64,000 nt of DNA from Malacoraja senta. Its lineage: Eukaryota. The notes under the pieces are model-generated. The model saw only the letters and a list, made by a program, of their open reading frames with translations. It did not search any database and was not told the origin of the DNA. The position numbers and the translations under genes are program-made. Numbering within the stretch: position 1 is the stretch's first letter; each line of letters opens with the position of its first letter. Location: the NCBI GenBank assembly GCA_038087875.1, contig JAXLNO010000796.1:124001-188000 (forward strand). Reading direction: 5' to 3'. Below are positions 7,041 to 54,119 of the stretch, piece by piece.

Positions 7041-8869
7041 GCCTTGATCCTGCCCTCAAGTACTGTCCGTGTGGAGTTTGCACCTTCCCCCTGTGACTGC
7101 GCTGGCTACCTCCAGGTGGTCCAGCTTCCTCGTACACCACATGCTGGCTTGTTGCTTAATTGGCCTCCGTGAAGTCAAAATGTGATGCATAAATGTGATA
7201 ACTCTGAACTGGTGTGAACGGATGGTCAATGACTGGTGTGGATTCGCTGGGCTGAATGGACTGATATATATTTCAGCCCTCTAAAAAATAATCCCAAAAC
7301 GTTATTTAAGGAATACAGGTTAATCCCAGAATCCTCATTGATATTTATCTTGCAGTTGATACCACCGAAGAACACAGATCATCTGTCGCTCATCACATTT
7401 CCCTTTGAATGAAAATTGAAAGCAGTGTTTGAGAGTGTCAGCGGTGAGGACAGGTTGGACAAACTTAGATCATTTGCTCTTGTGGAGTTGGAATATGAGG
7501 GGGGTGGGGGACACCTGATGGAAGTATATATAATTATGAGAGACACAGAGTAGAGAGGAGTAAATCTTAAATGATTTTTTACACAGAGAGTGGTGGGTGC
7601 TTGGAGCATGCTGTCAGAGGAAATAGTGGAAACAGATATGATAGCAATGTTTAAAGGCATTTAAACAGGCATGTATGTGGTACTGCTCTATGTTTTATGT
7701 TAACTAATAAATTGATTTTGACTGTCACGCCACACAGTGGCTCTTTTATTTTTTATTTTTATTATTATCTTGTTTATCTATTTATACTCTGTTTATGGGC
7801 CTGTTAGGCTGCTGCATGTAATAATGTAATTGTTCTGTTGTTGGAACATTTAATTAGACATTTCATTAAAGAAGCTTTCTCTTGTCTCTCTTGGGTCGTG
7901 ACATGTGAACAGAGAGGAAATGAAGGGGTGTGTGGAAAGGAACAGCAGATGCCGGTTTAAACCAAAGGTAGACACAAAAATCTTGAGTAACTCAGCGGGA
8001 AAGGCAGCATCTCAGGAGAGAAGGACTGGGTGATGTTTTGGATCGATGCCCTTCTTCAGTCTGGATAGACAATGTGCAGGAAGATGGGATTAGTTTGTAA
8101 AGGCAACATAGCCAGCACAGACGTTGTGATGCTAGGGCTTATCCCTGTGTGATCCTGCTCAATGTTCTCTGTTTATTCATTCAATAGTGTTTACATTTCA
8201 AGAAATACTCAGTGGTTCTAAATGTTTTTAAAATGTTGTGAAAGGTTTTACAAGAATGAATCTATATATTTTACTTTTTTCTCCGTTTTTCATATTCTGA
8301 TTTACATTGTAAAGAATCTCATTGTGTACGCACACAGAAACCAACCAAACAGTATCATACTTCAAGGCCAGAGTTTATGTTGCACTTGAACCTGCAAACA
8401 CCCTTGTTGGTATAACTTTATCAGTGTAACCATCTGTTGGCTTGTTACTTATTTGTTTATCGAAGCAGCTTGCTGTTAAATAAAGGTGATATATTTACCA
8501 CAGCTTCTCACTATGTAGCAGATCTCCCCCCTTGTCAATCTTTTCCGAGAGTCTCCCTTCTTTATCTCTTTCCTTTGCTGCTACATTTTCCTTGATCTCC
8601 ATTCCCTTTGTCCTGTTTTCACATCTTACACGTCCTTATCTATACACGTCCTTATCTATCGACCTCCCATTCCCCTGACATCAGCCTGAAGAAGGGTCTC
8701 GACCCAAAATGTCACCCATTCCTTCTCTTCAGAAATGCTGCCTGTCCCGACGAGTTACTCCAGCATGTTGTGTCTATGTCCTGATTGGATCTCTTGTTGT
8801 TTCCTTGCATTCTTATTTTGATTGTCATTAAAGTTGTTGGCCTTGCCTGTACTGGATCCCACCCCTGGC

Positions 8870-9410: not shown

Positions 9411-9810
9411 AGCATCCTTGTTCTGCATAGGAGCCAGGACCCATGTCTGTGAGTGGATGGAGGGCCACATCTGTCACCATAGTTAATAATTAATTAATTA
9501 TAGTTTTAAAAAATCGTAACAAAAAGACAATTACCCCCGGGACAAATACGACTAAAGTGCAACACTGTGGCCGGAGCGGAATTGCTCACCGACCTCGCTG
9601 ATGCTTTGTTTTCCTCCAGCCCGTCCACCGCTGGGCTCCCGAAGAAACCGCTCCAGCACAGCGTTGTCGAAGTCGCTCTCATCCCGCTGCAGTTTCACAC
9701 AAGCCACAGCACCGAGGTGGGGGTGGGGGGTGGGGGGGGGCGCTTTCACTTCGGGTGGTCGGGAGGATGGAAGAGGGGGTGGAAGGGTAGGGACGGGGAG
9801 AAAGATTTAA

Positions 9811-10124
9811 GGGCCTGTCCCACTGTACGAGGTAATTCAAGAGCTCTCCCGAGTTTTAAAAAAATCAAACTCGTGGTAAGTACGTAGAATGTACGTAGCG
9901 GGTACGTCGGAGCTCGGGACGTCTCTTAGTGGCTCGTAATGCTAACGGCATGTACTCAGGAAACGCGGTAAGCTCGTGAAGACTCGTGAAGATTTTTAAA
10001 CGTGTTGAAAAATGTCCACGAGAGCCCCGAGTACCTACGAGCGGCTATTACTGTAATTCTCCGAGTTCGAATCATGGGAAACTCGGGAGAACTCTTGAAT
10101 TAGCTCGTACAGTGGGACAGGCCT
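9811..10124. mobile_element. MITE with about 45-bp TIRs, PIF/Harbinger-like
   Basis: GGCCTGTCCCACTGTACGAG(G/C)TAATTCAAGAG(C/T)TCTCCCGAGTT at both ends in inverted orientation. Left flank TAA, right flank degenerate. No ORF. Confidence 0.75.
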
Positions 10125-10157
10125 TTGAGTCGACAGGTATTGTGATATGGAATTGGC

Positions 10158-10185
10158 TGTGTGTGTGTGTGTGTGTGTGTGTGTG
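10158..10185. repeat. (TG)14 microsatellite
   Basis: Direct read. Confidence 0.95.
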
Positions 10186-10897
10186 AGAACTGCTCTCGGA
10201 TAAGTGTTGTGTGTGTTTTGTGTTACGCCTGCGTGCCGGATGATTTCGAGTTACAGACCGGATCTGGGCCGTAGGTTGCCAACCCCTGATTTAACACAAA
10301 CTGTTAAAACACAAAGAAGGAAGGGACAGACAGACTGTTGGCGAGACAGCCATTGCTGGCGCCACCCAGTGGTTGGGTTGGTTAGTTAGTTTGCAGGCGC
10401 CACCAACATTGATGGAGTTGCGAACAGTGAAGAAGGCTGCCCAAGTGTACAATGGGAAATACATCAGATACAGAAATGGGCAGAAAATTGAAAATGGAGT
10501 TCATTTTGAGCAAGTATGTTACACTTTGAGTGGTCGAATGTAAAGGAAAAGTATACAGTTATTGGCAAGACCCTTAACAGCATTAATCTACAGAGAGATC
10601 TTGGGGTTGAATCTTGGGTTTCTAGAGACAGGAAGTCATAATACAGTTTTATAGGGCTGGGTAGTCCACATTTGGAGTATTATGTGTAGTTTTTGTTGAC
10701 CCATTACATAAAGGATGTAGAGGCATTGGAAAGGGTGCAGAGGTTTACAAGAATGATGCCTCAACTAGGGTGTGTTGGCTACATGAAACATATGGACAGA
10801 CATGGATTGCTTCCGCTACAATGCCGGAGTTTGATGGGACACCGGATAGAAGTACATAAAACTATGAGAGGTATAGATAGGATAGATAGTCAGAACA

Positions 10898-11224
10898 GGG
10901 GCAGTCACTGTGGCGCAGCGGTAGAGTTGCTGCTTTACAGCGCTTGCAGCGTGGGAGACCCAGGTTCGATCCCGACCACGGGTGCTGTACGTGTGGAGTT
11001 TGTACGTTCTCTCCATGACAGCATGGGTTTTCTCCGAGATCTTCGGTTTCCTCCCACACTCCAAAGATGTACAGGTATGTAGATTAATTGGCTTGGTGTA
11101 TGTGTAAATCGTCCCGAGTGTGTGTAGGATAGTGCTAATGCCCAGGGATCACTAGTCGGTGCGGACTCGGTGGGCCGAAGGGCCTGTTTCCACACTGTAT
11201 CTCTAAACTAAAATAAACTAAACT
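10898..11224 (+). mobile_element. V-SINE (HE1-like) inserted in a CR1 fragment
   Basis: tRNA head TGGCGCAGCGG/GTTCGATCC, V-domain GTTTGTACGTTCTC...GGTTTCCTCCCACA.TCCAAAGA and a (CTAAA)n tail. Confidence 0.85.
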
Positions 11225-12379
11225 CAACATGGATGGAAACATTAAATACAAGAGGGCATAGTTTTAAGATGAATGTTTAAAGGAAATGTGCAGGGCATGT
11301 TTTTTCACAGACAGTGACGAGTGCCTGGATGGCACTGTCTGAGGTGCGGTTGAGGCTGCTTGTAAATATATTGTCTTGCCTTCAGAGGTGTTGGGTCAAA
11401 ATCTTGCAAACCCCTCCAAAAAGTCTGTAACAGTCAGGTTTCTGCCTCATCTCAGTCCTTGCGATGAATCTCACACCTAAGCAATAAATTCAGGGTCATC
11501 CAGATTGCAAACACTGATGGAAACAAGCCAATTATCATTTGGTGTAACATTAAACTCACAGTTAAATATTAACAGAAAATAAATATCAGTACATCAAGAA
11601 AGTTGATGTTTCATGCTGACTAGGGTGTGGGAATTAGATGACTCGGGAATGGAATTTAGTTTTGTCTGAATTTTTAATGTACCTAGTAAATACACTTAAG
11701 ATATCAGCAATCAAGTAATTATTATGTGTTTTCACAATCACCACAATAGATCAGTACAACACAGGAACAGGCCCTTTGGCCCACAATGTCTGTGTTGAAC
11801 ATGATGCCAAGACCAACTCCTATCTGCCGGCACATAATATACCTCCATTCCCTGCACATCCTACAACAATAAGGGCAACATGGTGATGCAACACTGGAGT
11901 TGCTGCCTTATGTGCCACACAGCCGGGTTTGATCTTGACTATGGGTATGTAGGTTAATTGGGTTGGTATAAATGTAAACCTGTTCCAAGTGTGTGTAGGA
12001 TAGTGTTAGTGTGCGGGAATTGGTGCGGACCCTGTTTCTGCCCTGTATCTCTAAACTAAACTAAACTAAATGTGCTAACCAGTCAGTGGAAAGACAATAC
12101 ATGATTACAATCGAGCCATCCATAGTGTACAGATATATGATAAAGGGAATAACGTCAATAACATTTGGTGCAAGATAAAGGCAGTAAAGTCCGATCAAAG
12201 ATTGTCCAAGGATCTCCAATGCAGGAGACAGTAGTTCAAGACTGCACCCTGGTTGTTGGTAGGATGGTTTCAGTTACCTGATAACAATTGGGAAGAGACT
12301 GTCCCTGAATGTGGAGGTGTGAGTTTTGACAATTGGTTATATGAAGAGTAAAGTTGTTGTTATTCTGTTCAAATGAGCA

Positions 12380-12795: not shown

Positions 12796-13566
12796 CTTAT
12801 GATTGAGTAAATAGCTGTCTGTAGTATTAACAATGACAAAACAAGTATATAGGTCAGTGTAGCATGCTAACGTCTTGGTAAAACTCATTCAAAAGTATTT
12901 TATTAAATGCTCATAATTCAGAAATGACACTGGTGGATATACAATGACATTCTCAGTCTGTTGCACATAAAACACTTCCACAGCTATTACACCACAGCTT
13001 TGATAATGAGTATTGTTCCCAGTGATCTGTCAGGTCAACAAAACACAGCCCCCATACGTTACCATGTTCCATAAATATTCACATGACATGGTACTGGGAT
13101 GTTGTCTATGTGGAGTTTGCATGTTCTCCCTGTGACCACGTGGGATTTCTCCCGGTGCTCCGGTTTCCTCGCACATCTCAGTGATGTACAGGTTTGTAGG
13201 TGAGTTGGCTTTTGTAAAATTGCCCTAGTGTATGGAAAGAGGATGTGAAAGAGGGATAACAGAACTGGTGTGTTGGATGGTTGGTATCAACTCGATGAGC
13301 TGAAGGCTCTGCATCCATGCTGTATCACTCAACTAAACTAAGCAATATTATCTAAGCTGTGGTGTAGAGCGTGGTTCGTATTGAAAACAAAGATCCTTGT
13401 TGACTGGCCCATCAAATACTTGAAGCACTGAGTGAAGCATTAAATGCAAAGGCAATTACTTCTCCACTACACCATCAGGTATGTGAACAAGGAATGCAGG
13501 TTACAGTATGTGACAAAGAGAAGTGGCAAAATAACTAGGAACGAACTGCAGATGCAGGTTTAACCC

Positions 13567-13716: not shown

Positions 13717-15089
13717 CTGGCAAGATATGTATATGATGTTTGAGAGGCTTTTAGATCGACAAACTGATCTGCAGGAAATAGAGGGATATGGATCATGTTG
13801 CAGTTGGATGGGATCAGTTTAGCATCTCATCATGTTCACCACAGACATTGTGGGCCAAAGGGCCTCTTCCTGAGATGAACATTTTTATGTTTTATATAAA
13901 ATAAGATTAGTAATCAGCTGTAAGCCCCCTTGAACAGACTGCATCATTCAATAACATTATGTCCAATCTGATTTTGATCAGTTTACTGCATAATTCCTGC
14001 AATTTTTGATTCATTTCTGATCTAAAATTCTCTATATCTCAACCTAGAAAATATTCATTCACCTTGTCTTCACAGCTGGAATAGAAAGTTCAGGCAAATC
14101 ATACACCTCCTGGAAAATAAATCTTCTTCGTAACTATTTTAAAGAGGGACCCAACATGGGAGGACTGCTGAGAACAAAGATAACAAAGAGGGTCCCGGGG
14201 TTGGGGGGGGAGGGGGCGCGGATAACACAGGTGAACCCAACATGGAGGGGCTGCCGAGAACAAAGAGGGACCATTGGGGACTGTAATGATTACTTTGTAA
14301 CTGTGTCGACACCCTATACATGGTGACTTGTGTATGTATACCTTGTGTATGTTATGCAAAGCAAAGAATTTCACTGTGACATGTCACATGTGATAATAAA
14401 GTATCAATCAATCAAATAGGCGACCTTTTATTCCAAAATGTGGCGCAATGTATGACTTTGGAATCACAGGGTAACTGCAGTGAAGACAGCATTTGAAAAA
14501 TTAATGGCTGAATGTAAAGTCATCAGTCAGCATTGATACAATAAAGAGCATAGAACAGTACAGCACAAGAACAGGCCCTTTGACCCACAATGTTTGTGCC
14601 GAACATGATGCCAAGACCAATTGTTATCTGCTTGCACATAATCCATATCCATCCATTCCCTGCATATACATGTGCCTATCTAAAAGTCTCTTAAATGCCA
14701 CTATCATATCTGCTTCCACCACCACCTCCAGCAGCACATTCCAGTCACTCACCACCCTTGGCGTAAAACACTTGTCCTGCACATCTTTTTTTAACTTTGC
14801 CACTCATTGTAAAGCAATACCTGCTCTTATTTGATATTTCCTTCCTGGGTAAAAAGTCTGATGGTCTACCCTATCTCTACTCCTCCCAGTTTGATATATT
14901 ACTGTCAGGTCTCCCCTCAATCCCCGACATTCCAGAGAAAACAATCCAACTGTCCAGTCTGTCCAACTTCTCCCTGTGGCTAATACCCCACTAATCCAGG
15001 CATCATTCCGGTAGACCTCCTCTGCATCCCAAAGGAAGCTGATTGTGCTTCATGGTCCTCTCCTGGTCTCTGCTGTTGTCAGCTGGTAC

Positions 15090-15223
15090 CTGTTCATTGA
15101 AAGGTTTTCTCTTTTTCCTCTTCTTCCAGCAACCAATTCCAAGGATGATCCCCAGGAGAATGAGAGGAACAATTACAGCTCCAGTCACGATCCTAATCTT
15201 CATATCTTCTTTCACTGCCCTCT
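15090..15223 (-). CDS. MHC class I-like exon 5, connecting peptide, transmembrane and start of cytoplasmic tail
   Basis: Acceptor CAACAG in phase 1, then (E)RAVKEDMKIRIVTGAVIVPLILLGIILGIGCWKKRKKRKPFNEQ. Hydrophobic span followed by a KKRKKRK stop-transfer cluster. Possible donor GTACCA after 15090, otherwise read-through to TGA at 15003-15005. Confidence 0.8.
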
Positions 15224-15540
15224 CTGTTGGCATATACAGTGGCTTGCAAAAGTATTCATACCCCTTGAACTTTTCCACATTTTGTCACGTTACAACCACA
15301 AGCGTAAATGTATTTTATTGGGATTTTATGTGATAGACCAACATAAAGTGGCACATAATTGTGAAGTGGAAGGAAAATTATACATGGTTTTCAAATTTTT
15401 TTACAAATAAAAAACTGAAAAGTGTCGCGTGCGAAAATATTCAGCCCCCTTTACTCTGATACCCCTAAATAAAATCCAGTGCAACCAATTGCCTTCAGAA
15501 GTCACCTTATTAGTAAATAGAGTCCACTTGTGTGTAATCT

Positions 15541-15883
15541 CGGGACGACAGATGGCGCAATGGGCTAAGTGTTCGGCTGGCAACCGGAAGGTAGCCGGTT
15601 CGAATCCCGCTTGGAGTGCATACTGTCGTTGTGTCCTTGGGCAAGACACTTCACCCACCTTTGCCTGCGTGTGAATGTGTGTGAGTGATTGGTGGTGGTC
15701 GGAGGGGCCGTAGGCGCAGATTAGCAGCCACGCTTCCGTCAGTCTGCCCCAGGGCAGCTGTGGCTACAGAAGTAGCTCACCACCACCGAGTGTGACTGAG
15801 GAGTGAATGAATAATGCGATGTAAAGCGCCGAGTATTAGAAAGGCGCTATATAAATCCCATCCATTATTATTATTATTATTAT
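15541..15883 (+). mobile_element. tRNA-derived CORE-SINE (AFC-like) inserted in the Tc1 5-prime region
   Basis: A box TGGCGCAATGG, B box GGTTCGAATCC, CORE-like GTGTCCTTGGGCAAGACACTTCACC and an (ATT)n tail. TSD TAATCT at 15535-40 and 15884-89. Confidence 0.85.
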
Positions 15884-15964
15884 TAATCTAATCTCAGTAT
15901 AAATACAGCTGTTCTGTGAAGGCCTCAGAGGTTTGTTAGAGAACATTAGTGAACAAACAACATC

Positions 15965-16986
15965 ATGAAGCCAAAGGAACACACCAGACAGGTCAGGGAT
16001 AAAGTTGTGGAGAAGTTTAAAACAGGGTTAGGTTATAAATAAATATCCCAAGCTTTGAACATCTCACGGAGCACTGTTCAATCCCTCATCCGAAAATGGA
16101 AAGAGTATGGCACAACTGCAAACCTACCAAGACATGGCCGTCCACCTAAACTGACAGGCCGGGCAAGGAGAGCATTGATCAGAGAAGCAGCCAAGAGGCC
16201 CATGGTAACTCTGCAGGAGCTGCAGAGATCCACAGCTCAGGTGGGAGAATCTGTCCACAGGAAAACTATTAGTCGTGCACTCCACAAATCGGGCCTTTAT
16301 GGAAGAGTGGCAAGAAGAAAGCCATTGTTGAAAAAAGCCCATAAGAAGTCCCGTTTGCAGTTTGCCACAAGCCATGTGGGGGACACAGCAAACATGTGGA
16401 GGAAGGTGCTCTGGTCAGATGAGACCAAAATTGAAGTTTTTGGCCTAAATGCAAAACGCTATGTGTGGCGGAAACCTAACACTGCACATCACCCTGAACA
16501 CACCATCCCCACTGTGAAACATGGTGGTGGCAGCATTATGCTGTGGGGATGCTTTTCTTCAGCAGGGACAGGGAAGCTGGTCAGAGTTGATGGGGGAAGA
16601 TGGATGGAGCCAAATACAGGGCAATCTTGGAAGAAAACCTGTTAGAGTCTGCAAAAGACTTGAGACCGGGGCGGAAGTTCACCTTCCAGCAGGACAACGA
16701 CCCTAAACATACAGCCAGAGCTACAATGGAATGGTTTAGATCAAAGCGTATTCATGTGTTAGAATGGCCCAGTCAAAGTCCAGACCTAAATCCAATTGAG
16801 AATCTCTGGCAAGACTTGAAAATTGCTGTTCACAGATGCTCTCCATCCAATCTGACTGAGCTTGAGCTATTTTGCAAAGAAGAATGGGCAAAAATTTCAG
16901 TCTCTAGATGTGCAAAGCTGGTAGAGATATACCCCAAAAGACTTGCAGCTGTAATTGCAGCGAAAGGTGGTTCTACAAAGTATTGA
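15965..16986 (+). pseudogene. Tc1 DD34E transposase, inactivated
   Basis: MKPKEHTRQVRDKVVEKF start, GRPPKL AT-hook, WSDE, QQDND and PIEN with 34 residues between the second D and E. TAA at 16040-16042 and a frameshift in the G-run near 16590. Confidence 0.95.
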
Positions 16987-18349
16987 CTCAGGGGGGCTGA
17001 ATACTTTTGCACGCGACACTTTTCAGTTTTTTATTTGTAACAAAATTTGAAAACCATGTATCATTTTCCTTCCACTTCACAATTATGCACCACTTTGTGT
17101 TGGTCTATCACATAAAATCCCAATAAAATACATTTACGTTTGTGGTTGTAACGTGACAAAATGTGGAAAAGTTCAAGGGGTATGAAAACTTTTGCAAGCC
17201 ACTGTATAGTGCATTTTAAACATTTAGTGATCAATAACAACATTGTAATGATTTTATTATCTAAATTAAAGTAGCACTGTTCATATCTAATTAAAAAGTA
17301 ATAACGTTTTAGATTTAAGTATTTATACAGAGGATGGATGTGCTTAAAATGATCAATGAAAAATCATTAAGTTCATATTAGCATTGAGGTATTGAGATTT
17401 TATCTGCAGCATTTAATTAAGAATTTAAAGAATCAAGTACGTCAGAAATATATGACTATTTACAGTGTAGAGGTCAACAAGGCCATTTTCTTATGTTGAT
17501 GATTGTTATTATAGCAAATAAAAGTGAACCCATTTATAGTTGATAAAACTTCAAAGGTTTTAATCTTTGCTGATATTTCAATGATATCTGAGTTTAATTT
17601 TCTCACATACACATGCTCTCTCTTTCTCTCTCTCTCCCCCTCACTGTCTCACACACATGAGCCCACACACACACACATAGGCACACACAGACATTAACAC
17701 TACTGTCTATTTGTACTGACCAGCAATCTTAACCATGTCAGCTTGGCCCTGGTGTGAAGATCTTTGCAGAGGTCTTGTCTGGAACAAATAAGTCAGCTAC
17801 AGAACAGGTGCTGCTACTTCAGCCTGATAATATGGCACCACTATTGGTCTTTTGTGTAACTAGCTACTATCAGAAAATTAGCTAGATGCCCAAGGAAGAA
17901 GATAAGAGACCTTGTCCAGGATCAGCCTATCTTGCTTCCACTGTTCCTACATTTGGATGGGTGAGTTAAGGGTGACATAAGAATAATTTTGACCATAAGA
18001 TATTGGAGCGGAATTATGCCTTTCAAGTCCATTGAGTCTACTCCACCATTCAGTCATAGCAGATCTATTTTTTACCGCTAAATCCCATTCTCTAGCCTTC
18101 TCCCTGTAACCTTTGTCACCCGTACTCATCAAGAACCTATCAATCTCTGCTTGAAAAATATGCAATGACTTGACCCACACAGCTGTTTGTATCAATGAAT
18201 TCCACAGATTCACCACCCTGTGACTAAAGAGATTCCTCCTCATCTCCATATTGAAGGTAGGTATTTTTATTGTGAGGCTGTGCTAGACTCTCCCATTACT
18301 GAAAACTTCCTTTCCCATCAACTAACCAGGCATTTCATTATCTGGTAGG

Positions 18350-21300
18350 CAGGGCCGGATTTACATATAAGATGGACAAGCTTCAGTTTAGGGCCTGGAG
18401 ATCTAGGAGGGGCTCGCAGAGCCGGATTTACCACTAGGCTTCATAGGCTGAAGCCTGGGGCCCTGAAATATAGGGGGCCTCCGGCCAAGGCAGGACACCA
18501 GCCGTTCAACTCTGGGCGGGGTGGCCCCCCTCTCTATCTCTATCTCCGTCTGTCACTCTCCGTGTCCGGGTCTCCGTTCTCCGCTCGCTCCTCATCCGCC
18601 GGCACGGCCGGCCGCCTTGCACATGCACACTGCTACGGCCAGCACGTCCTCCCCTGCACATGCGCACAACCACAGCCCGCACGTCATCGGCCGCCCTGCG
18701 CATGCGCACTGCCACGGCAACTGGTCGGGGCTGGGCACTTTCTCCCTCGCTTTGAATTGTGGGAGATTTGGCCGCCATTGCTGCCTCGCCGCAACCGCTG
18801 AAAACTAACACAGAATCACTCCCTGACCCTGGATCAGGAGTATCTCCCTGGAGTAACTCTCGCTTCTGGTTTCCTGATCCTCCATAAATATTCTAAAAGG
18901 AATTTAAACTGGAGGTGGTAGAGGGCTGAACAATAACAGCCTATTGCATTTTATCTGTTTATTTATTGTGTATATATATGGTCTATGGTATATAAACACA
19001 CTGAACTTTTATCTCCTGTTCTGTATTATGTTCACATATTATGTTGTGCTGCAGCAAGCAAGAATTTCATTGTCCTATCTGGGACACATGACAATAAAAC
19101 TCTCTTGACTCTTGACTTGGACTTAAGCAAAAAAGGGTTCTTGGGGAAAAAAGAGGTACCTTAAATTTAGTTGCGTCTGGTTGGGTAACTATGGTAGGGT
19201 GAAGACTATTCCATGCTTTAATTGTGCGGGGGAACTCCATGGAGCAGCCAGCAACTCAGGATAGAAGAAATTGGGTGACGTTTCGGGTAGAAACACTTCT
19301 TTAGACTCCCTCTGGTTTTAGTGTCTTTAGCTTAATTTGAAGATACAGCGTGGAAACAGGCCCTTCAGCCCTCCGAGTCCACGCCGACTATTGATCACCC
19401 GTACACTAGTTCTTTCCCACACATTAGCGAAGTAAGTCAAGAGTCAAGAGTTTATTCTCTCACGTCCCAGTTAGAACAATGAAATCCTTACTTGCAGCAG
19501 CACAACAGAATATGTAAACATAGTACTCTGTAAACAATGTTATAAACGAGAAAACAAAACGGTGTATATTTATAGCTGTGGTGAAGACAATCGCTGCTGC
19601 TACCCGACCCCCGGAGATTCGGAGGCTACAACCGCGGGTCTGGCGGACGGCAACACCGGAAGCCCGTGGGTCCCCTGGTGGGACACCGCTTTTCGGGGCA
19701 TCCGCAGCGGCGACTTCTCCCGCCCGAGTTGCGGGGTTGAAGAGCACCTGGAGGGGAGCTTTACATCACCGCCCCGCGCGGCTTGGAATGGCCGCCGGAC
19801 TTTGCGAGCGCGCGCCGGGGCTCTAACACCAAGACGCGGTGCGCGACCCTGCATTAACCGGCGTGGCTTTAATGGCCGCGGGATAATCACCATCGCCCGC
19901 CGGGGGCTTTGACTTTGACTCTGACATCGGGGGGGTGGGGGGGGGGAGTGCAGTGGAGAGATACGTTTTTTTGCCTTCCATCACAGCGCTGTGATGGATG
20001 TATGTGTAAATTGTGTTGTGTCTCGGGTCTTCTTCGTTTTGTAATGTATGGCTGCAGAAACGACATTTCGTTTGGACCTCAACGGGGTCCAAATGACAAA
20101 TTTGTCCAAAAGACAAATAAAATTGTATTGTAATTGTATTGTATATATATATATGTGTGTGTGTGTGTGTGCATAGTATATATACCCACACGCACACACA
20201 CACAATTTCCCTCCTGGGATTAATAAAGTTCTATCGTATAGTATCGTGTGTGTAGGAAGGAACTGCAAATGCTGGTTTAAATTGAAGATAGACACACAAA
20301 GCTGGAGTAACTCAACAGGTCAGACAGAATCTCTGGACAAAAGGGAAATATTACGTTTAGGGTTGGTTCTGAAATAGGTTCCTGCACACCTTTGGAATGT
20401 GGAAGGAAACAAGAGCACCCGAAGAAAACCCATGCGATCAAAGTGAAAAGGAGCAAACTCCAAACAGACAACACCCATATTCAGGATCAATTCCAGGTCT
20501 CTGGCACTTTTAGGCAGCAACCTTATGGCCAATGTACAGCCCCATTGTCTTGAACTTAATTAAAACGCCAAGTGTAGCATTTCCTGCAGTTGCAATGGAA
20601 AGTGCCAGGAGAGGGGGTGGTTTGGGTGGGAAGGGACGAATTGACCAGCGAGTTACGGAGGGAGCGGTCTCTATGGAAAGCCAACAGGGGAGGAGATGGG
20701 AAGATGTGGCCAGTTGTGGGATCCCATTGGTAGACAAAAAAGCTGTAGAAAATCAGCGGGTGAGGCAGCACCTGTGGAGCGAAGGAATAGACGATGTTTC
20801 GGGTCGAGACCCTTCTTCAGATTGATGTCGGGGGGGGGGGGGAATGACATGAAAAATAAAGGAAGAGACGGAGACAGTAGGCTGTGGGAGAGCTGGGAAT
20901 GGGAGGGGAAGGAGGGAGAAAGCAAGGACTACCTGAAATTAGAGAAGCCTATGTGCATAGCGCTGGGGTGTAAACTACCCAAGCAAATATGAGGTGCTGC
21001 CCCTCCAATATGCGGTGGGCCTCACTCTGGCCATGGAGGAGGCCCAGGACAGAAAGGTCAGATTCGGAATGGGAGGGGGAGTTGAAGTGCTGAGCCACCG
21101 GGAGATCAGGTTGGTTATTGCGAACTGAGTGGAGGTGTTGTGCGAAGCAATCGCCAAGCCTGCACTTGGTCTCACCGAGGTTGATCATACGCTGAATAAT
21201 CCAACCACATTTTTTTTTGGAAGTGGAAAGAAATAATAGAAATTGCATTCATTGCAACGTGTAAAAAGAGTTAAGATACAGTATTATAATTGTGCTGCAT

Positions 21301-22327: not shown

Positions 22328-22968
22328 CACTAGGTGGAACTGCTGCCTTACAGCGCCAGAGACCCGGTTCAATTCTGACTACGGGTCCCGTCTGTACAGA
22401 GTTTTGTACCTTCTCCCCGGGACTTGCGTGGGTTTTGCCTGGATCTCCGGTTTCCTCACTCAGTCCAAAGACATACAGGTTTGTAGGTTAATTGGCTTGG
22501 TATAATTGTAAATTGTCCCCTAATAAGTAAGATAATGTAAGTGTGCAGGGATCGCTGGTTGACGCAGACTCGGTGGGCTGAAGGGCCGGTTTCTGCGCTG
22601 TATCTCTTAAACTAAAACCACATTCCATTGACTATCAATAATTATGAGCAATTAGATAACCACAAATTAATAATGGGTGGCACAGTGGCGTAGCGGTAGA
22701 GCTGCTGCCTTACTGCACCAGAGACCTGGGTTTGATCCTGACTACAGGTGCTGTCTGCAAGGACATTGTATGTTCTCCCTGTGACTGCGTGGGTTTCCTC
22801 CCACACTACAAAGACATACAGGTTTGTAGGTTACTTGGCTTAGGTAAAATTGTAAATTGTCCGTACTGTGTAGGTTAGTGTAAATGTATGGGTTGATCAC
22901 TATTCAGCGAGGACTCAGTGAGCTGAGGGGCCTGTATCTGCAGCATATCTCTAAAGCCTAAAGTCTAA
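22328..22968 (+). mobile_element. Two V-SINE (HE1-like) copies (about 22328-22618 and 22675-22968)
   Basis: Same head, V-domain and tail as 10898-11224. Confidence 0.8.
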
Positions 22969-24150: not shown

Positions 24151-24433
24151 GGGTGGCGAAGCGGTCGAGCTACTGCCTTACAGCGCCAGAGACCTGGGTT
24201 TGTTACTAACTACGGGTGCTTGTCTTTACAGAGTTCTCCCTGTGACCTGCGTGGGTTTTATCCGAGATCTTCGGTTTCCCCTCACACTCGAAAGACGTAC
24301 AAATTTGTAGGTTAATTGGATTGGTATAAATGCAAATTGTCCCTAGTGTGTGTAGGATAGTGTTAGTGTGCGGGCATGGCTGCTCGGTGCGGTCTCGGTG
24401 GGTTTCCGCGCTGTATCTCTAAACTAAACTAAA
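24151..24433 (+). mobile_element. V-SINE (HE1-like) in class I intron 3
   Basis: Same consensus, CTAAACTAAACTAAA tail. Confidence 0.8.
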
Positions 24434-33808: not shown

Positions 33809-34118
33809 GGGGTGGCACAATGGCGCAGCGGTGGAGCTGCTGTCTTACAGCGCCAGAGACCCGGGTTCGATCCTGACAACGGGTGCTGTCAGTAAGGTGT
33901 CTGTACGTTCTCCCCGTGATCACATGGGATTTCTCCGGGAGCTCTGATTTCCTCCCACACTCCAAAGACATACAGGTTTGTAAGTTATTGTCCTTCGGTA
34001 AAAACAATGGTAAATTGTCTCACCTGTGTCGGATGGTGCTGGTTTATGGGGATCGCTGGTCGGCGCGGACTCAGTAGGATGAAGGGACTATTTCAGCGCT
34101 GTATCTCTAAAACTAAAC
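33809..34118 (+). mobile_element. V-SINE (HE1-like)
   Basis: GGTGGCACAATGGCGCAGCGG...GGTTCGATCC head, V-domain and tail. Confidence 0.85.
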
Positions 34119-47313: not shown

Positions 47314-48375
47314 ATGAGGGCCAGGGCAGTTTACTGTTTAGGATGTCAGATGTATTGTATCCAGGGTAAGGGGAGTATGAGGGCCAGGGCAGTTTGTTGT
47401 TCTGGATGTCAGATGTATTGTATCCAGGGTAAGGGGATTATGAGGGCCAGGGCAGTTTACTGTTCTGGATGTCAGATGTGGGAAGTCATGGAGTCTGATA
47501 GCCCTCCAGACGTCCACATCTGCGCCAGGTGTATCGAGATGGGGCTCCTAGTGGACGGTATTAGGAACCTGGAGCAGCAGCTCGATGACCTCCGTCTGGT
47601 CAGGGAGAGCGAGGAAGTCATTGAGAGGAGTTACAGGGATGTGGTCACTCCAACACCACAGGAGGCAGGCAAGTGGATCACGGTTGGGAGAGGCAAGGGG
47701 CACAGGCAGGGACTAGAGAGTACCCCGGTGGCTGTACACCTTGACAATAAGTACTCCTGTTTGAGCACTGTTGGGGTGGACAGCCTACCTGGGGGTAGCG
47801 ACAGCGGCCGGGCCTCCGGTATAGAGACCGGTCCTGTTGCTCAGAAGGGCAAGGAAAAGAAGAGGAGGGCAATATTAATAGGGGACTCTATAGTTAGGGG
47901 GTCAGACAGGCGATTCTGTGGACGCAGTCGGGAGACCCGGATGGTAGTTTGTCTCCCTGGCGCCAGGGTCTGTGATGTGTCTCAACGTGTCCAAGACACC
48001 CTGAAAGGGCAGGGAGAGGAGCCCGAGGTCGTGATACATATAGGTACCAATGACATAGGTAAAAAAAGAGAAGAGGTCCTGAAAGGAGAATTTAGGGAGT
48101 TAGGAGGGGAGTTAAAGAGAAGGACAGCAAAGGTAACAATCTCGGGATTACTGCCTGTACCACGCGACAGTGAGAGTAGGAATGGAGCGAGGTGGAGGAT
48201 AAATGCGTGGCTGAAGGACTGGTGCAGAAGGCAGGGATTCAAATTTCTGGATCATTGGGACCTCTTTTGTGGAAGGTTCGACCTGTACAAAAAGGATGGG
48301 TTGCACTTGAACCTGAGGGGGACCGATATCCTGGCGGGGAGATCTGCAAAGGCTACTGGGGAGACTTTAATCTAG
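47314..48375 (+). CDS. CR1 ORF1p: zinc finger/coiled coil plus SGNH esterase
   Basis: CSGCQMWE...HICARC, heptad LRNLEQQLDDL-like segment, IGDSIVRG, HIGTNDI and DGLHLN (SGNH blocks I, III, V). 353 aa. Confidence 0.93.
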   Translation: MRARAVYCLGCQMYCIQGKGSMRARAVCCSGCQMYCIQGKGIMRARAVYCSGCQMWEVMESDSPPDVHICARCIEMGLLVDGIRNLEQQLDDLRLVRESEEVIERSYRDVVTPTPQEAGKWITVGRGKGHRQGLESTPVAVHLDNKYSCLSTVGVDSLPGGSDSGRASGIETGPVAQKGKEKKRRAILIGDSIVRGSDRRFCGRSRETRMVVCLPGARVCDVSQRVQDTLKGQGEEPEVVIHIGTNDIGKKREEVLKGEFRELGGELKRRTAKVTISGLLPVPRDSESRNGARWRINAWLKDWCRRQGFKFLDHWDLFCGRFDLYKKDGLHLNLRGTDILAGRSAKATGETLI

Positions 48376-48554
48376 AATGGTTGGGGGGAGGGACTCAAAT
48401 AGAGAATGCTATTAGACAGTGTGTGAGGCAGGAGGCAGAGAAGGAAAGCACTCAGACCCAACATGTAGGGGGGAAAGAAGAAAACAATAATAAACAGAGA
48501 ATAAGAGGTGGTGGGGTTCTTAAATGGGTGAGCAGAGAAACAGAGGGGTGTAAA

Positions 48555-51509
48555 ATGCGGGCGGAAGCAATAGGTAGCAAGGTGAAAGGTAAAAGTGGCA
48601 GGCAGACAAATCCAGGGCAAAAATCAAAAAGAGCCACTTTTCAACATAATTGTATAAGGGGTAAGAGCGTTGTAAAAACAAGCCTGAAGGCTTTGTGTCT
48701 CAATGCAAGGAGCATTCGTAATAAGGTGGATGAGTTGAATGTGCAGATAGCAATTAATGATTATGATATAGTTGGGATCACGGAGACATGGCTCCAAGGT
48801 GACCAAGGCTGGGAGCTGAACATCCAGGGATATTCAATATTCAGGAGGGATAGAGAGAAAGGAAAAGGAGGTGGGGTAGCGTTGCTGGTTAGAGAGGAGA
48901 TTAACGCAGTGGAAAGTAAGGACATTAGCTTGGAGGATGTGGAATCGGTATGGGTAGAGCTGCGAAACACTAAGGGGCATAAAACGCTGGTGGGTGTTGT
49001 GTACAGGCCACCTAGCAGTAGTAGTGAAGTTGGGGATGGCATCAAACAGGAAATTAGAAATGCGTGCAACAAAGGCAAAACAGTTATAATGGGTGACTTC
49101 AATCTACATATAGATTGGGTGAATCAAATTGGCAGGGGTGCTGAGGAAGAGGATTTCTTGGAATGTATGAGGGATAGTTATCTAAACCAACATGTAGAGG
49201 AACCAACGAGAGAGCAGGCTATTCTAGACTGGGTATTGAGTAATGAGGAAGGGTTAGTTAGCAGACTTGTTGTGCGTGCCCCCTTGGGCAAGAGTGATCA
49301 TAATATGGTTGAGTTCTTCATTAGGATGGAGAGTGACATTGTTAATTCAGAAACAACGGTTCTGAACTTAAAGAAAGGTAACTTTGAGGGTATGAGACGT
49401 GAATTGGCCAAGATTGACTGGCAATTAGTTCTAAAAGGGCTGACGGTGGATATGCAATGGAAGGCATTTAAAGACTGCATGGATGAACTACAAAAATTGT
49501 TCATCCCAGTTTGGCAAAAGAATAAATCAAGGAAGGTAGTGCATCCGTGGATAACAAGGGAAATCAGGGATAGTATCAAAGCAAAAGATGATGCGTACAA
49601 ATTAGCCAGAAAAAGCAGCATACCAGAGGACTGGGAGAAATTCAGAGACAAGCAGAGGAGGACAAAGGGCTTAATTAGGAAAGGGAAAATAGATTATGAA
49701 AGGAAACTGGCAGGGAACATAAAAACTGACTGCAAAAGTTTTTATAGATATGTGAAGAGAAAGAGATTAGTTAAATCAAATGTAGGTCCCTTGCAGTCAG
49801 AAACAGGTGAATTGATCATGGGGAACAAGGATATGGCAGACCAATTGAATAACTACTTTGGTTCCGTCTTCACTAAGGAAGACATAAATAATCTGCCGGA
49901 AATAGCAGGGGGCCGCGGGTCAAAGGAGATGGAGGAACTGAGTGAAATCCAGGTTAGTCGGGAAGTGGTGTTGGGTAAATTGAATGGATTAAAGGCCGAT
50001 AAATCACCAGGGCCAGATAGGCTGCATCCCAGAGTACTTAAGGAAGTAGCTCCAGAAATAGTGGATGCATTAGTGATAATTTTTCAAAACTCTTTAGATT
50101 CTGGAGTAGTTCCTGAGGATTGGAGGGTAGCAAACGTAACCCCACTTTTTAAGAAGGGAGGGAGAGAGAAAACGGGGAATTACAGACCAGTTAGTCTAAC
50201 ATCGGTAGTGGGGAAACTGCTAGAGTCAGTTATTAAAGATGGGATAGCAGCACATTTGGAAAGTGGTGAAATCATTGGACAAAGTCAGCATGGATTTACG
50301 AAAGGTAAATCGTGTCTGACGAATCTTATAGAATTTTTCGAGGATGTAACTAGTAGAGTGGATAGGGGAGAACCAGTGGATGTGTTGTATCTGGACTTTC
50401 AGAAGGCTTTCGACAAGGTACCACATAAGAGATTAGGATACAAACTTAAATCACACGGTATTGGGGGTTCAGTATTGATGTGGATAGAGAACTGGCTGGC
50501 AAACAGGAAGCAAAGAGTAGGAGTAAACGGGTCCTTTTCACAATGGCAGGCAGTGACTAGTGGGGTACCGCAAGGCTCAGTGCTGGGACCCCAGCTATTT
50601 ACAATTTATATTAATGATCTGGACGAGGGAATTGAAAGCAACATCTCCAAGTTTGCGGATGACACTAAGCTGGGGGGCAGTGTTAGCTGTGAGGAGGATG
50701 CTAGGAGACTGCAAGGTGACTTGGATAGGCTGGGTGAGTGGGCAAATGTTTGGCAGATGCAGTATAATGTGGATAAATGTGAGGTTATCCACTTTGGTAG
50801 CAAAAACGGGAAGGCAGACTATTATCTAAATGGTGGCCGATTAGGAAATAGGGAGATGCAGCGAGACCTGGGTGTCATGGTACACCAGTCATTGAAAGTA
50901 GGCATGCAGGTGCAGCAGGCAGTGAAGAAAGCGAATGGTATGTTGGCCTTCATAGCAAGAGGATTTGAGTATAGGAGCAGGGAGGTTCTACTGCAGTTGT
51001 ACAGGGTCTTGGTGAGACCACACCTGGAGTATTGCGTACAGTTTTGGTCTCCAAATCTGAGGAAGGACATTATAGCCATAGAGGGAGTGCAGAGAAGGTT
51101 CACCAGACTGATTCCTGGGATGTCAGGACTTTCATATGAAGAAAGACTGGATAGACTTGGCTTATACTCGCTAGAATTTAGGAGATTGAGAGGGGATCTT
51201 ATAGAAACGTACAAAATTCTTATGGGGTTGGACAGGCTAGATGCAGGAAGATTGTTCCCGATGTTGGGGAAGTCCAGGACAAGGGGTCACAGCTTAAGGA
51301 TAAGGGGGAAATCCTTTAAGACCGAGATGAGGAAAAACTTTTTCACACAGAGAGTGGTGAATCTCTGGAACTCTCTGCCACAGAGGGTAGTTGAGGCCAG
51401 TTCATTGGCTATATTTAAGAGGGAATTAGATGTGGCCCTTGTGGCTAAAGGGATCAGGGGTATGGAGAGAAGGCAGGTACGGGATACTGAGTTGGATGAT
51501 CAGCCATGA
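48555..51509 (+). CDS. CR1 ORF2p: APE endonuclease plus reverse transcriptase (first ATG 48555; frame open from at least 48192)
   Basis: LNARS, GITETW, GDFN, SDH (APE); [31 protein letters not shown] (RT). A 1-nt shorter G-run near 51455 alters the last residues relative to GYGEKAGTGY in other copies. Confidence 0.95.
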   Translation: MRAEAIGSKVKGKSGRQTNPGQKSKRATFQHNCIRGKSVVKTSLKALCLNARSIRNKVDELNVQIAINDYDIVGITETWLQGDQGWELNIQGYSIFRRDREKGKGGGVALLVREEINAVESKDISLEDVESVWVELRNTKGHKTLVGVVYRPPSSSSEVGDGIKQEIRNACNKGKTVIMGDFNLHIDWVNQIGRGAEEEDFLECMRDSYLNQHVEEPTREQAILDWVLSNEEGLVSRLVVRAPLGKSDHNMVEFFIRMESDIVNSETTVLNLKKGNFEGMRRELAKIDWQLVLKGLTVDMQWKAFKDCMDELQKLFIPVWQKNKSRKVVHPWITREIRDSIKAKDDAYKLARKSSIPEDWEKFRDKQRRTKGLIRKGKIDYERKLAGNIKTDCKSFYRYVKRKRLVKSNVGPLQSETGELIMGNKDMADQLNNYFGSVFTKEDINNLPEIAGGRGSKEMEELSEIQVSREVVLGKLNGLKADKSPGPDRLHPRVLKEVAPEIVDALVIIFQNSLDSGVVPEDWRVANVTPLFKKGGREKTGNYRPVSLTSVVGKLLESVIKDGIAAHLESGEIIGQSQHGFTKGKSCLTNLIEFFEDVTSRVDRGEPVDVLYLDFQKAFDKVPHKRLGYKLKSHGIGGSVLMWIENWLANRKQRVGVNGSFSQWQAVTSGVPQGSVLGPQLFTIYINDLDEGIESNISKFADDTKLGGSVSCEEDARRLQGDLDRLGEWANVWQMQYNVDKCEVIHFGSKNGKADYYLNGGRLGNREMQRDLGVMVHQSLKVGMQVQQAVKKANGMLAFIARGFEYRSREVLLQLYRVLVRPHLEYCVQFWSPNLRKDIIAIEGVQRRFTRLIPGMSGLSYEERLDRLGLYSLEFRRLRGDLIETYKILMGLDRLDAGRLFPMLGKSRTRGHSLRIRGKSFKTEMRKNFFTQRVVNLWNSLPQRVVEASSLAIFKRELDVALVAKGIRGMERRQVRDTELDDQP

Positions 51510-51620: not shown

Positions 51621-53408
51621 TAGATACATAGATACATAGAAATTAGGTGCAGGAGTAGGCCATTCGGCCCTTCGAGCCTGCACCGCCATTCAATACGATC
51701 ATGGCTGATCATCCAACTCAGTATCCCGTACCTGCCTTCTCTCCATACCCCCTGATCCCTTTAGCCACAAGGGCCACATCTAATTCCCTCTTAAACATAG
51801 CCAATGAACTGGCCTCAACTACCCTCTGTGGCAGAGAGTTCCAGAGATTCACCACTCTCTGTGTGAAAAAGTTTTTCCTCATCTCGGTCTTAAAGGATTT
51901 TCCCCTTATCCTTAAGCTGTGACCCCTTGTCCTGGACTTCCCCAACATCGGGAACAATCTTCCTGCATCTAGCCTGTCCAACCCCATAAGAATCTTGTAC
52001 GTTTCTATAAGATCCCCTCTCAATCTCCTAAATTCTAGCGAGTATAAGCCAAGTCTATCCAGTCTTTCTTCATATGAAAGTCCTGACATCCCAGGAATCA
52101 GTCTGGTGAACCTTCTCTGCACTCCCTCTATGGCTATAATGTCCTTCCTCAGATTTGGAGACCAAAACTGTACGCAATACTCCAGGTGTGGTCTCACCAA
52201 GACCCTGTACAACTGCAGTAGAACCTCACTGCTCCTATACTCAAATCCTCTTGCTATGAAGGCCAACATACCATTCGCTTTCTTCACTGCCTGCTGCACC
52301 TGCATGCCTACTTTCAATGACTGGTGTACCATGACACCCAGGTCTCGCTGCATCTCCCCATTTCCTAATCGGCCACCATTTAGATAATAGTCTGCCTTCC
52401 CGTTTTTGCTACCAAAGTGGATAACCTCACATTTATCCACATTATACTGCATCTGCCAAACATTTGCCCACTCACCCAGCCTATCCAAGTCACCTTGCAG
52501 TCTCCTAGCATCCTCCTCACAGCTAACACTGCCCCCCAGCTTAGTGTCATCCGCAAACTTGGAGATGTTGCTTTCAATTCCCTCGTCCAGATCATTAATA
52601 TAAATTGTAAATAGCTGGGGTCCCAGCACTGAGCCTTGTGGTACCCCACTAGTCACTGTCTGCCATTGTGAAAAGGACCCGTTTACTCCTACTCTTTGCT
52701 TCCTGTTTGCCAGCCAGTTCTCTATCCACATCAATACTGAACCCCCAATACCGTGTGATTTAAGTTTGTATCCTAATCTCTTATGTGGTACCTTGTCGAA
52801 AGCCTTCTGAAAGTCCAGATACAACACATCCACTGGTTCTCCCCTATCCACTCTACTAGTTACATCCTCGAAAAATTCTATAAGATTCGTCAGACACGAT
52901 TTACCTTTCGTAAATCCATGCTGACTTTGTCCAATGATTTCACCACTTTCCAAATGTGCTGCTATCCCATCTTTAATAACTGACTCTAGCAGTTTCCCCA
53001 CTACCGATGTTAGACTAACTGGTCTGTAATTCCCCGTTTTCTCTCTCCCTCCCTTCTTAAAAAGTGGGGTTACGTTTGCTACCCTCCAATCCTCAGGAAC
53101 TACTCCAGAATCTAAAGAGTTTTGAAAAATTATCACTAATGCATCCACTATTTCTGGAGCTACTTCCTTAAGTACTCTGGGATGCAGCCTATCTGGCCCT
53201 GGTGATTTATCGGCCTTTAATCCATTCAATTTACCCAACACCACTTCCCGACTAACCTGGATTTCACTCAGTTCCTCCATCTCCTTTGACCCGCGGCCCC
53301 CTGCTATTTCCGGCAGATTATTTATGTCTTCCTTAGTGAAGACGGAACCAAAGTAGTTATTCAATTGGTCTGCCATATCCTTGTTCCCCATGATCAATTC
53401 ACCTGTTT
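51621..53408 (-). mobile_element. 5-prime-truncated CR1 copy nearly identical to 49801-51591, tail-to-tail
   Basis: The 586-aa ORF is identical to the ORF2 RT half except for four substitutions and the C-terminus. Confidence 0.96.
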
Positions 53409-54119
53409 TCCTCACCAGAAGGGCATTGTGATCCAGGTGGGTTTGCCAGCAATCTGGTGCCTTCACAGTCAACATCATTGAATCTGGAACTTAATACATG
53501 AATTAATTATTCATTTTTATTTCAATTCCCCAGATTCCAAAGCAGGATTTGGATTCATATTTCCAGATGGAGAATCAAGCCCTCTTCATATTGAATCACC
53601 AGAACTCGTCACTGTCGTCTCTATAGTCTCTCTATTAGTTTCTCATTGAGCTGTGCTTTCCCAAGGTAATACTCTTTGCAAACTGGTGGATAAATTGCTC
53701 CCAGTGTCTCAGTAAACAAATATGCATGTGGAATGGCCACAATTTTTGTGTGTCCGATCCAGAAAATACATGCCCTTTCTGCAAGCACAATCTACACCCA
53801 GAAATGCTTGGTCACGTTAGCGGAGTGGCACAAATAGACCCGTAAACTGTTATAATTCTGTTCAATCCTGACAAATGGTTTTATAAAATGTGAAAGTGCT
53901 CAGGAATATGATAGATTTTCTAAATACAATCTGCTTGATCATTGATCATTAATCTCCGAATTGTATACGGGCTATGAAAATATAAACAAATTCGGCTGGA
54001 GATGGCAAGGGAAGCTACAGTATGTGTCCATACTGCAGCATGTGGGAGTTAGTGATCAGTGCAACTCTCTTCGGGATGTCCATGTCTGCATGAAAGGATT
54101 CTGCCTTCAATCACTTGGG

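Follow-up and report, generated by a model that had tools for sequence, protein, structure and literature searches.

Does a Tc1 transposon with a short interspersed nuclear element (SINE) inside it, found in the genome of a skate, record the joint arrival of two teleost elements or two separate events? The question is raised by a stretch of 64,000 nucleotides (nt) of Malacoraja senta DNA (assembly GCA_038087875.1, contig JAXLNO010000796.1, positions 124,001 to 188,000 of the forward strand; hereafter the window, with positions counted from its first letter), in which a Tc1 at 15237-17204 encloses a SINE of 343 bp. A preliminary description, made from the letters alone, had proposed that both elements are derived from teleosts and that the SINE possibly hitch-hiked inside the DNA transposon. 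If true, SINE transfer inside a DNA transposon would be rare and notable, and the evidence says that this did not happen at this locus. We consider it likely that the structure is a nested insertion, in which a horizontally acquired Tc1 lineage came first and a resident SINE was then inserted locally into one of its copies.

Nested insertion of the SINE

The features of the locus are given below, with the strand in brackets where one applies. IR/DR denotes the inverted repeat/direct repeat layout of the Tc1 termini. The sequences used for comparison include a paralogous Tc1 copy (L001), a contig of the catfish Pangasius (L005), a plaice contig that carries the Tc1 element Passport (L004), a contig with a SINE-like element (L006), and the reads and contigs of several runs (X1, X15, X21, X23).

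15235-15236: left TA target-site duplication of the Tc1, read directly and the same as the TA at 17205-17206
15237-17204 (+): whole Tc1 element with CAGTG ends, made up of about 1619 bp of Tc1 sequence, the SINE of 343 bp and its 6-bp duplication
15237-15449 (+): left IR/DR terminal inverted repeat, which matches the right arm at 95.8% over 213 nt
15535-15540: left target-site duplication of the SINE, TAATCT, present as a single copy at the empty site in L001, L005 and L004
15541-15883 (+): tRNA-derived CORE-type SINE in the orientation of the transposase, 343 bp, highly repeated in runs X15 and X1
15545-15619 (+): tRNA-like head of the SINE, called tRNA-Ala(ggc) by ARAGORN, with an A-box-like TGGCGCAATGGG and a B box GGTTCGAATCC read directly
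15630-15657 (+): CORE-like motif TGTGTCCTTGGGCAAGACACTTCACCC, common to two tRNA-headed SINEs of the plaice contig L004
15689-15789 (+): conserved block of 101 nt, for which a fold of three hairpins with a closing 11-bp stem is predicted
15805-15884 (+): 3' tail of the SINE (TGTAAAGCGC...AAAGGCGCTATATAAATCC) with (ATT)7, about 69% identical to the tail of the L006 element
15884-15889: right target-site duplication of the SINE, TAATCT, from direct reading and empty-site comparison
15965-16984 (+): transposase gene remnant of 340 codons, DD34E type, with its ATG at 15965, a stop and a frameshift
16992-17204 (-): right IR/DR terminal inverted repeat, with direct repeats at 16988-17017 and 17173-17202
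17205-17206: right TA target-site duplication of the Tc1, read directly

The SINE lies between the left inverted repeat of the Tc1 and the transposase ATG. The L001, Pangasius and Passport copies are without the SINE and have one TAATCT at this site, and the insertion in the window copy is therefore clean. All 12 of the other Tc1 copies or consensus contigs that were compared lack the SINE and read through the empty site, where GTGTGTAATCT is directly joined to AATCTCAG. These twelve are three elements on the European Nucleotide Archive (ENA) contig L008 (one of them first seen as L001), the contigs L009-L014, L002/L003 (counted once), Pangasius L005, and Passport on L004. Loose ends reading AATCTCAGTATAAATACAGCTG occur right after 15540 in 14, 49 and 2 contigs of three runs.

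From its 5' end the SINE consists of the tRNA-like head, the GTGTCCTTGGGCAAGACACTT motif, a GC-rich block, the AAAGGCGCTATATAAATCC tail and (ATT)7. The Rfam tRNA model scores the head at 20.8 bits (E 0.07), under the gathering score of 29; sub-threshold scores of this kind are usual for SINE heads. The tRNA-like head, the length of 343 bp, the TAATCT duplication, the (ATT)7 and the high read depth identify the element as a tRNA-derived SINE, and the label CORE follows published usage (PMC4824008) and not an alignment to a reference. The preliminary description had recognized a complete SINE with a 6-bp duplication (TAATCT) inside the Tc1, which the empty-site comparison confirms, and had found it unlike the other SINEs of the window. 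It is indeed the only copy in the 64-kb window, and SINE pieces of the V-domain type are present at no fewer than six other sites. The V-domain pieces (7057-7129, 10991-11057, 13105-13168, 22745-22801, 24233-24281 and 33882-33974) are similar to the head of the L006 element, with matches of 72-86%.

The SINE and Tc1 families are independent of each other in the read data. Summed depth in run X1 reaches 0.58-1.05 million in the three full SINE bins (15552-15809) and 0.12-0.19 million in the adjacent Tc1 bins. The SINE in this run is 3-8 times deeper than the adjoining Tc1 bins, and therefore is not confined to the Tc1. Across two runs, the summed depth of the three full SINE bins is 0.26-1.0 million. 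The opposite pattern is found in run X21, where the depth of the Tc1 is 0.6-1.35 million and that of the SINE only 38-86. The few SINE contigs of X21 are 94-96% identical, and its Tc1 consensus is a few sites away from that of the host. As X21 is rich in the Tc1 and nearly without the SINE, the SINE burst is lineage-specific and separable from the Tc1. The proposal that the SINE is a hitch-hiking teleost passenger is thus not upheld, given the 12 SINE-free Tc1 copies and the abundance in the reads of SINE independent of the Tc1, the latter being what the preliminary description itself had named as telling against that part of its proposal.

The SINE copy also looks younger than the Tc1 copy that hosts it. 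Compared with its paralogue and three outgroups, the window Tc1 has 19 private substitutions in 1422 columns (1.3%), and 12 of the 19 are at sites where most contigs from the read data disagree with the window. At this rate, the 343-bp SINE should have acquired about 4-5 private changes. No majority difference occurs among the listed sites of the SINE in X15, a run that covers the flanks too.

On these observations, a DD34E Tc1 of the Passport/ZB-like kind would first have inserted at an intronic TA. Its lineage would have entered an elasmobranch ancestor through a horizontal transfer in which bony vertebrates took part, and then multiplied, with intact copies persisting in the same genome or in a closely related one. 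The window copy would subsequently have decayed, accumulating the 1.3% of private substitutions, one stop and one 2-bp frameshift, and an abundant resident tRNA-headed CORE-type SINE would have retrotransposed into it between the left repeat and the ATG. The SINE was presumably transcribed by RNA polymerase III and inserted by a partner long interspersed nuclear element (LINE) via target-primed reverse transcription, which would leave the 6-bp TAATCT duplication and the (ATT)7 tail.

Several points weigh against this two-step reading. The count of no private change in the SINE rests on listed variant sites only, and depth summed over contigs is not copy number. The assignment of X15 to the host and of X1 and X21 to relatives rests on coverage of the flanks and of LINEs, not on labels. 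An assembled stand-alone SINE was not seen in the window and L008 (84 kb together), where the nested copy is the only one. Finally, vertical descent of both elements was judged without shark or chimaera sequence.

Teleost likeness of the SINE

If the SINE did not arrive inside the Tc1, the SINE family or its partner LINE might still have come from bony fishes by a horizontal transfer of its own, separate from that of the Tc1, with later amplification in skates. We regard this as improbable, although it survives better than the other alternatives considered here. Its basis is the 101-nt block. A metagenome scan with a 24-nt core pattern of the SINE recovered two contigs, L006 and L007, neither of which holds a full-length relative. 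The integrase encoded on L006 has only teleosts among its named relatives (53-68% identity), and L006 is a probable teleost contig on this evidence. The SINE and L006 agree in 93 of 100 positions over 15689-15788. In run X23 the raw reads cover nothing but the 101-nt block, at 90-95% identity; the element that carries it there is high-copy, and X23 is without an elasmobranch LINE bin. The very small number of SINE copies in X21 also fits such an acquisition, in that amplification would have been lineage-specific.

Against this, identity with L006 drops to 63%, 65% and 69% in three segments that flank the block to its left and right. The head of the L006 element is of the V type; it also matches the other SINEs of the window and is unrelated to the head of the skate SINE. 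The L006 element ends in (GATT)n and the skate SINE in (ATT)7. The flanks of the X23 reads resemble L006. With a block at 93%, flanks at 63-69% and a different head, the likeness is therefore modular and fits a conserved module; it does not have the uniformity expected of a whole element transferred recently. A protein search with the longest open reading frame (ORF) of the SINE gave three unnamed matches, none of them close, with the block behind other heads. Two SINEs of the plaice contig L004 have only the head and the CORE motif in common with the skate SINE, at about 65% identity. The 3' half of the SINE was not found in plaice L004 and Pangasius L005 (about 42 kb) by BLAST or with a covariance model of the block.

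The positions at which the block differs are also informative. A fold predicted from the skate sequence alone contains three hairpins and a closing stem of 11 bp formed by UGGUGGUGG and CCACCACCA. Its energy z-score of -1.47 is not significant by itself, and no covariation was seen between the only two full sequences compared. Six of the seven differences between the skate and L006 blocks are at unpaired positions, and the seventh changes a G-C pair to G-U (binomial P 8e-4). The six variant sites of the block seen in other runs are all unpaired. This avoidance of paired positions supports selection on RNA structure, as far as the predicted fold is correct, and is what long-term constraint, as opposed to recent acquisition from bony fishes, predicts. 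Descent within elasmobranchs is further suggested by a graded pattern, in which the SINE contigs of X21 are 94-96% identical and X1 and X15 differ at a fixed site. Central SINE domains that are conserved across phyla are well documented (PMC4824008).

The block would most likely act as a recognition element for a partner LINE, or be a central domain like those kept across phyla; we infer both this role and the partner LINE. A fuller proposal, which we offer tentatively and think rather unlikely in its entirety, is that the block is an unnamed SINE/LINE module with a three-hairpin RNA, common to an elasmobranch CORE-SINE and to V-headed bony-fish SINEs, kept at about 93% identity by structural selection and likely serving as a LINE handle. 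A more exotic variant would have the block module or its LINE move between fish classes.

Known SINEs provide parallels for most parts of the element. The CORE-SINE superfamily, including the cichlid SINE_AFC with its "CORE2" (PMC4824008), has the same tRNA head, a GTGTCCTTGGGCAAGACACTT-type motif, a LINE-like tail and a short tandem repeat. The CORE domain by which the superfamily is defined is about 45-65 bp long. The window SINE differs in having a second conserved block, of 101 nt, downstream of CORE, a block that in L006 stands behind a V-type head. A literature search with sequence strings gave no match. Among cartilaginous fishes, a little skate fragment is 84% identical to the Deu-domain and tail of the dogfish SacSINE1, which is a relative of zebrafish SINE3 (PMC2746220). 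Like the window SINE, SacSINE1 is tRNA-derived, comes from a cartilaginous fish and has a conserved central domain, and its tail is of the L2/CR1 type and teleost-related; it differs in length (463 bp versus 343 bp). SacSINE1 thus offers a precedent in which the likeness between SINEs of skates and of bony fishes lies in modules that are old and common to both. The window SINE illustrates how a resident element can look foreign because of a conserved, structured module, and candidates for "teleost-like SINEs" in this genome should be treated with caution.

Probable horizontal movement of the Tc1

Including the SINE, the Tc1 is 1968 bp long; it starts with CAGTGGC, ends with GCCACTG and is flanked by a TA duplication. 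The terminal repeats are about 213 nt long and about 96% alike in a global alignment (9-10 mismatches), and a repeat search reports inverted arms of 224 nt that are 95% complementary. In the right arm, the inner and outer direct repeats (16988-17017 and 17173-17202) are 80% alike, as in the IR/DR layout, and the left outer repeat (15239-15268) pairs with the right inner one. Pfam finds HTH_Tnp_Tc3_2 (4e-26) and DDE_3 (2e-11) in the transposase, and a match to HTH_SB under its cutoff. The catalytic triad is D152, D244 and E279, and the 34 residues that separate D244 from E279 make it DD34E. The TA duplication, the CAGTG-ended terminal inverted repeats and the HTH and DDE domains place the element in the DD34E/Tc1 family, and the 213-nt arms with direct repeats place it in the IR/DR subgroup (Sleeping Beauty, Passport and ZB type). 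There is no second copy in the 64-kb window, which contains no runs of N.

The transposase reading frame has exactly two lesions. One is a TAA stop at 16040-16042, due to an A-to-T change at 16040 that is private to the window copy; the other is a frameshift caused by GG inserted in a G-run near 16592-16593, which is 2 bp and not 1 bp. Both the two coding lesions and the small number of differences between the terminal repeats had been read correctly in the preliminary description. Divergence between the two terminal repeats was rejected as a measure of age, since the arms of IR/DR Tc1 elements are not identical at insertion.

The nearest named relatives of this Tc1 are in pangasiid catfishes (91-95% protein identity), whose proteins share a 90%-identity cluster with its transposase. 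At the DNA level the window copy is 92.9% identical to a copy from Pangasius djambal, 90.7% to L002 and 84.4% to Passport. The synonymous divergence (dS) is 0.12, 0.20 and 0.27, respectively, with a ratio of nonsynonymous to synonymous divergence (dN/dS) of 0.3-0.4. An intact transposase from L008 is 91% identical to the Pangasius protein, 95% to a fragment from Pangasianodon gigas, 90% to Cynoglossus, 89.7% to Oreochromis niloticus, 86.7-88.5% to Xenopus tropicalis and 85.9% to Passport. For the window transposase the values are 86.5% (Oreochromis niloticus), 84-85.5% (Xenopus tropicalis copies) and 83.8% (Passport).

In a midpoint-rooted maximum-likelihood tree of transposases, the window copy pairs with L001 (91/88). 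The pair is nested in a 19-row clade with copies from catfish, characin, carp, cichlid, bichir, Xenopus, gar and salmonid. Passport joins this clade as its sister (100/97), and copies from sturgeon, paddlefish, spiny eel, clownfish and other distant copies are outside. The topology is unrelated to the species tree, and the Xenopus, cichlid, carp and bichir copies differ from one another by no more than 0.05 substitutions per site.

Could the Tc1 be an old vertical resident of cartilaginous fishes, with its teleost likeness due to conservation? A ZB-like Tc1 is recorded in the chimaera Callorhinchus milii (PMC9777934, supplement), and the family occurs in at least three elasmobranch-type data sets, which would fit such a history. 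We nevertheless find this very hard to credit. The lineages of cartilaginous and bony fishes have been separate for more than 400 million years, long enough to saturate synonymous sites. With a dS of 0.12 to the catfish copy, vertical descent therefore cannot explain the Tc1. Copies moreover evolve neutrally once inserted. Between the window copy and its paralogue L001 dS is 0.03 and dN/dS is 1.3, and a ratio of 1.3 between elasmobranch-type paralogues indicates neutral decay after insertion. An old resident is also at odds with a tree that departs grossly from the species tree, and with the youth of the family, whose copies are 0.2-2% from their consensus and in some cases intact.

Horizontal movement of the Tc1 is thus well supported by the sequence comparisons. 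The transfer involving bony fishes that had been suggested for this element holds up, with 92.9% DNA identity, a dS of 0.12 and a position within an actinopterygian/anuran clade. The close resemblance to Passport noted at the same time stands in part: Passport is a true relative (83.8% protein identity) but not the closest one, as it forms the sister branch to the clade of the window copy. We infer the direction and the date of the transfer, and the diversity of Tc1 elements in actinopterygians points to these fishes as the reservoir. Viral contigs were searched for the transposase as a possible vector, and none carrying it was found; a literature search on Tc1 transfer in skates found no paper naming skates.

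The closest described systems are Passport, from Pleuronectes platessa (PMC2651795), and the ZB-like clade (PMC9777934). Like the window Tc1 they have a TA target, CAGTG ends, IR/DR arms of about 200-213 nt, a length of about 1.6 kb and a DD34E transposase of 340 amino acids. The ZB-like elements of Oreochromis niloticus and Xenopus tropicalis are 1611 and 1618 bp long (PMC9777934). The survey by Jia et al. (2022) placed the ZB-like clade next to Passport and recorded it in 271 actinopterygians, anurans, lampreys, squamates and one chondrichthyan, with a patchy distribution, predominant horizontal transfer and an actinopterygian reservoir (PMC9777934). The window element is probably ZB-like, a placement made with a tree that had no ZB reference sequence. 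Transfers among fishes, lampreys, frogs and squamates show the same near-identity in distant vertebrates (PMC9777934); here the partner is an elasmobranch lineage, and the only chondrichthyan of that survey is Callorhinchus milii. The Tc1 is thus a new host record. A Passport/ZB-like lineage otherwise known for its jumps between bony fishes, frogs, lampreys and squamates has also become established in an elasmobranch lineage, where it looks young and has intact copies.

Residence in this lineage is documented by the ENA contig L008, in which three SINE-free Tc1 copies occur within 19.7 kb (1057-2674, 9621-11257 and 17767-19382). In L001/L008 the Tc1 is flanked by LINE sequence with 96-97% identity to LINE copies of the window, which places the origin of the contig in the same species or in one very close to it. 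Two of the L008 copies, each 97.5% identical to the window copy, retain intact 339-amino-acid transposase frames; these intact copies are 99.3-99.8% identical to contigs of six other data sets. The window Tc1 is itself 98.1-98.4% identical to the consensus-like contigs L009-L014. Because copies differ from the consensus by 0.2-2% and some are intact, the family is young, and it may still be active. Run X21 contains a repeat at least 90% identical to one in the left flank of the Tc1 (bin 14950-15035), which suggests that X21 is another elasmobranch.

These intact copies bear on the original idea of a passenger, in which a teleost Tc1 already carrying a teleost SINE would have been transferred to the skate lineage. 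The SINE could in principle ride the Tc1, as it lies between intact terminal repeats and the composite could be mobilized in trans by the intact transposases of the lineage; its 93% block is also common to a probable teleost element. Yet the SINE is absent from all 12 other copies or consensus contigs, teleost ones included, no teleost locus examined contains the full SINE, the SINE is deeper than the adjacent Tc1 in X1 and almost disappears in the Tc1-rich X21, and the SINE copy looks younger than the Tc1 around it. The passenger is already largely refuted by this evidence, and we give it very little credence. Least plausible of all is a teleost fragment stitched into the skate contig by contamination or misassembly: among the listed contigs none spans the whole element or its outer junctions, but the TA duplication and termini are precise, X15 covers 30 of 30 bins with both flanks included, and the three Tc1 copies of the independent contig L008, amid LINEs 96-97% identical to those of the window, rule out contamination as the source of the Tc1. 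A nested insertion of a resident SINE into a horizontally acquired Tc1 remains the likely history of the locus.

Two further observations concern Tc1 sequences. The region at 16498-16583 (HGGGSIMLWGCF) is a conserved Tc1 stretch that draws reads and contigs of a second Tc1 family in all four runs, with a common loose end AGCGGCAGGAACTGGGAGACTAGTCAGGAT after 16557. A 339-amino-acid protein annotated by NCBI as "IS630 family transposase [Escherichia coli]" (P0057) is 67% identical to the window Tc1 and groups in the tree with copies from Pygocentrus, Polypterus and Erpetoichthys; it is most likely animal DNA that contaminates a bacterial assembly.

Neighbouring features of the window

The window also contains an uninterrupted LINE ORF2 of 1105 amino acids (48192-51509, plus strand) with endonuclease and reverse transcriptase by Atlas features. 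An inverted LINE ORF of 586 amino acids (51718-53478, minus strand) adjoins it. The LINE at 48192-51509 may be active, judging from its open frame; its 3' end has no match to the tail of the SINE.

A putative exon of the transmembrane/cytoplasmic type is present on the minus strand at 15089-15236 (...KIRIVTGAVIVPLILLGIILGIGCWKKRKKRKPFNEQ, followed by a gt donor). The probable acceptor AG of this exon is near 15223, and the TA target of the Tc1 is about 11 nt upstream of it, in the would-be polypyrimidine tract. Also on the minus strand is a gene resembling major histocompatibility complex (MHC) class I, with an alpha1 exon at 26.4-26.8 kb and an alpha2 exon at 24.5-24.9 kb, the latter with an MHC class I fold in a PDB search. 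The exon at 15089-15236 may be the transmembrane exon of this MHC class I-like gene, in which case the Tc1 could be a lesion in that gene.

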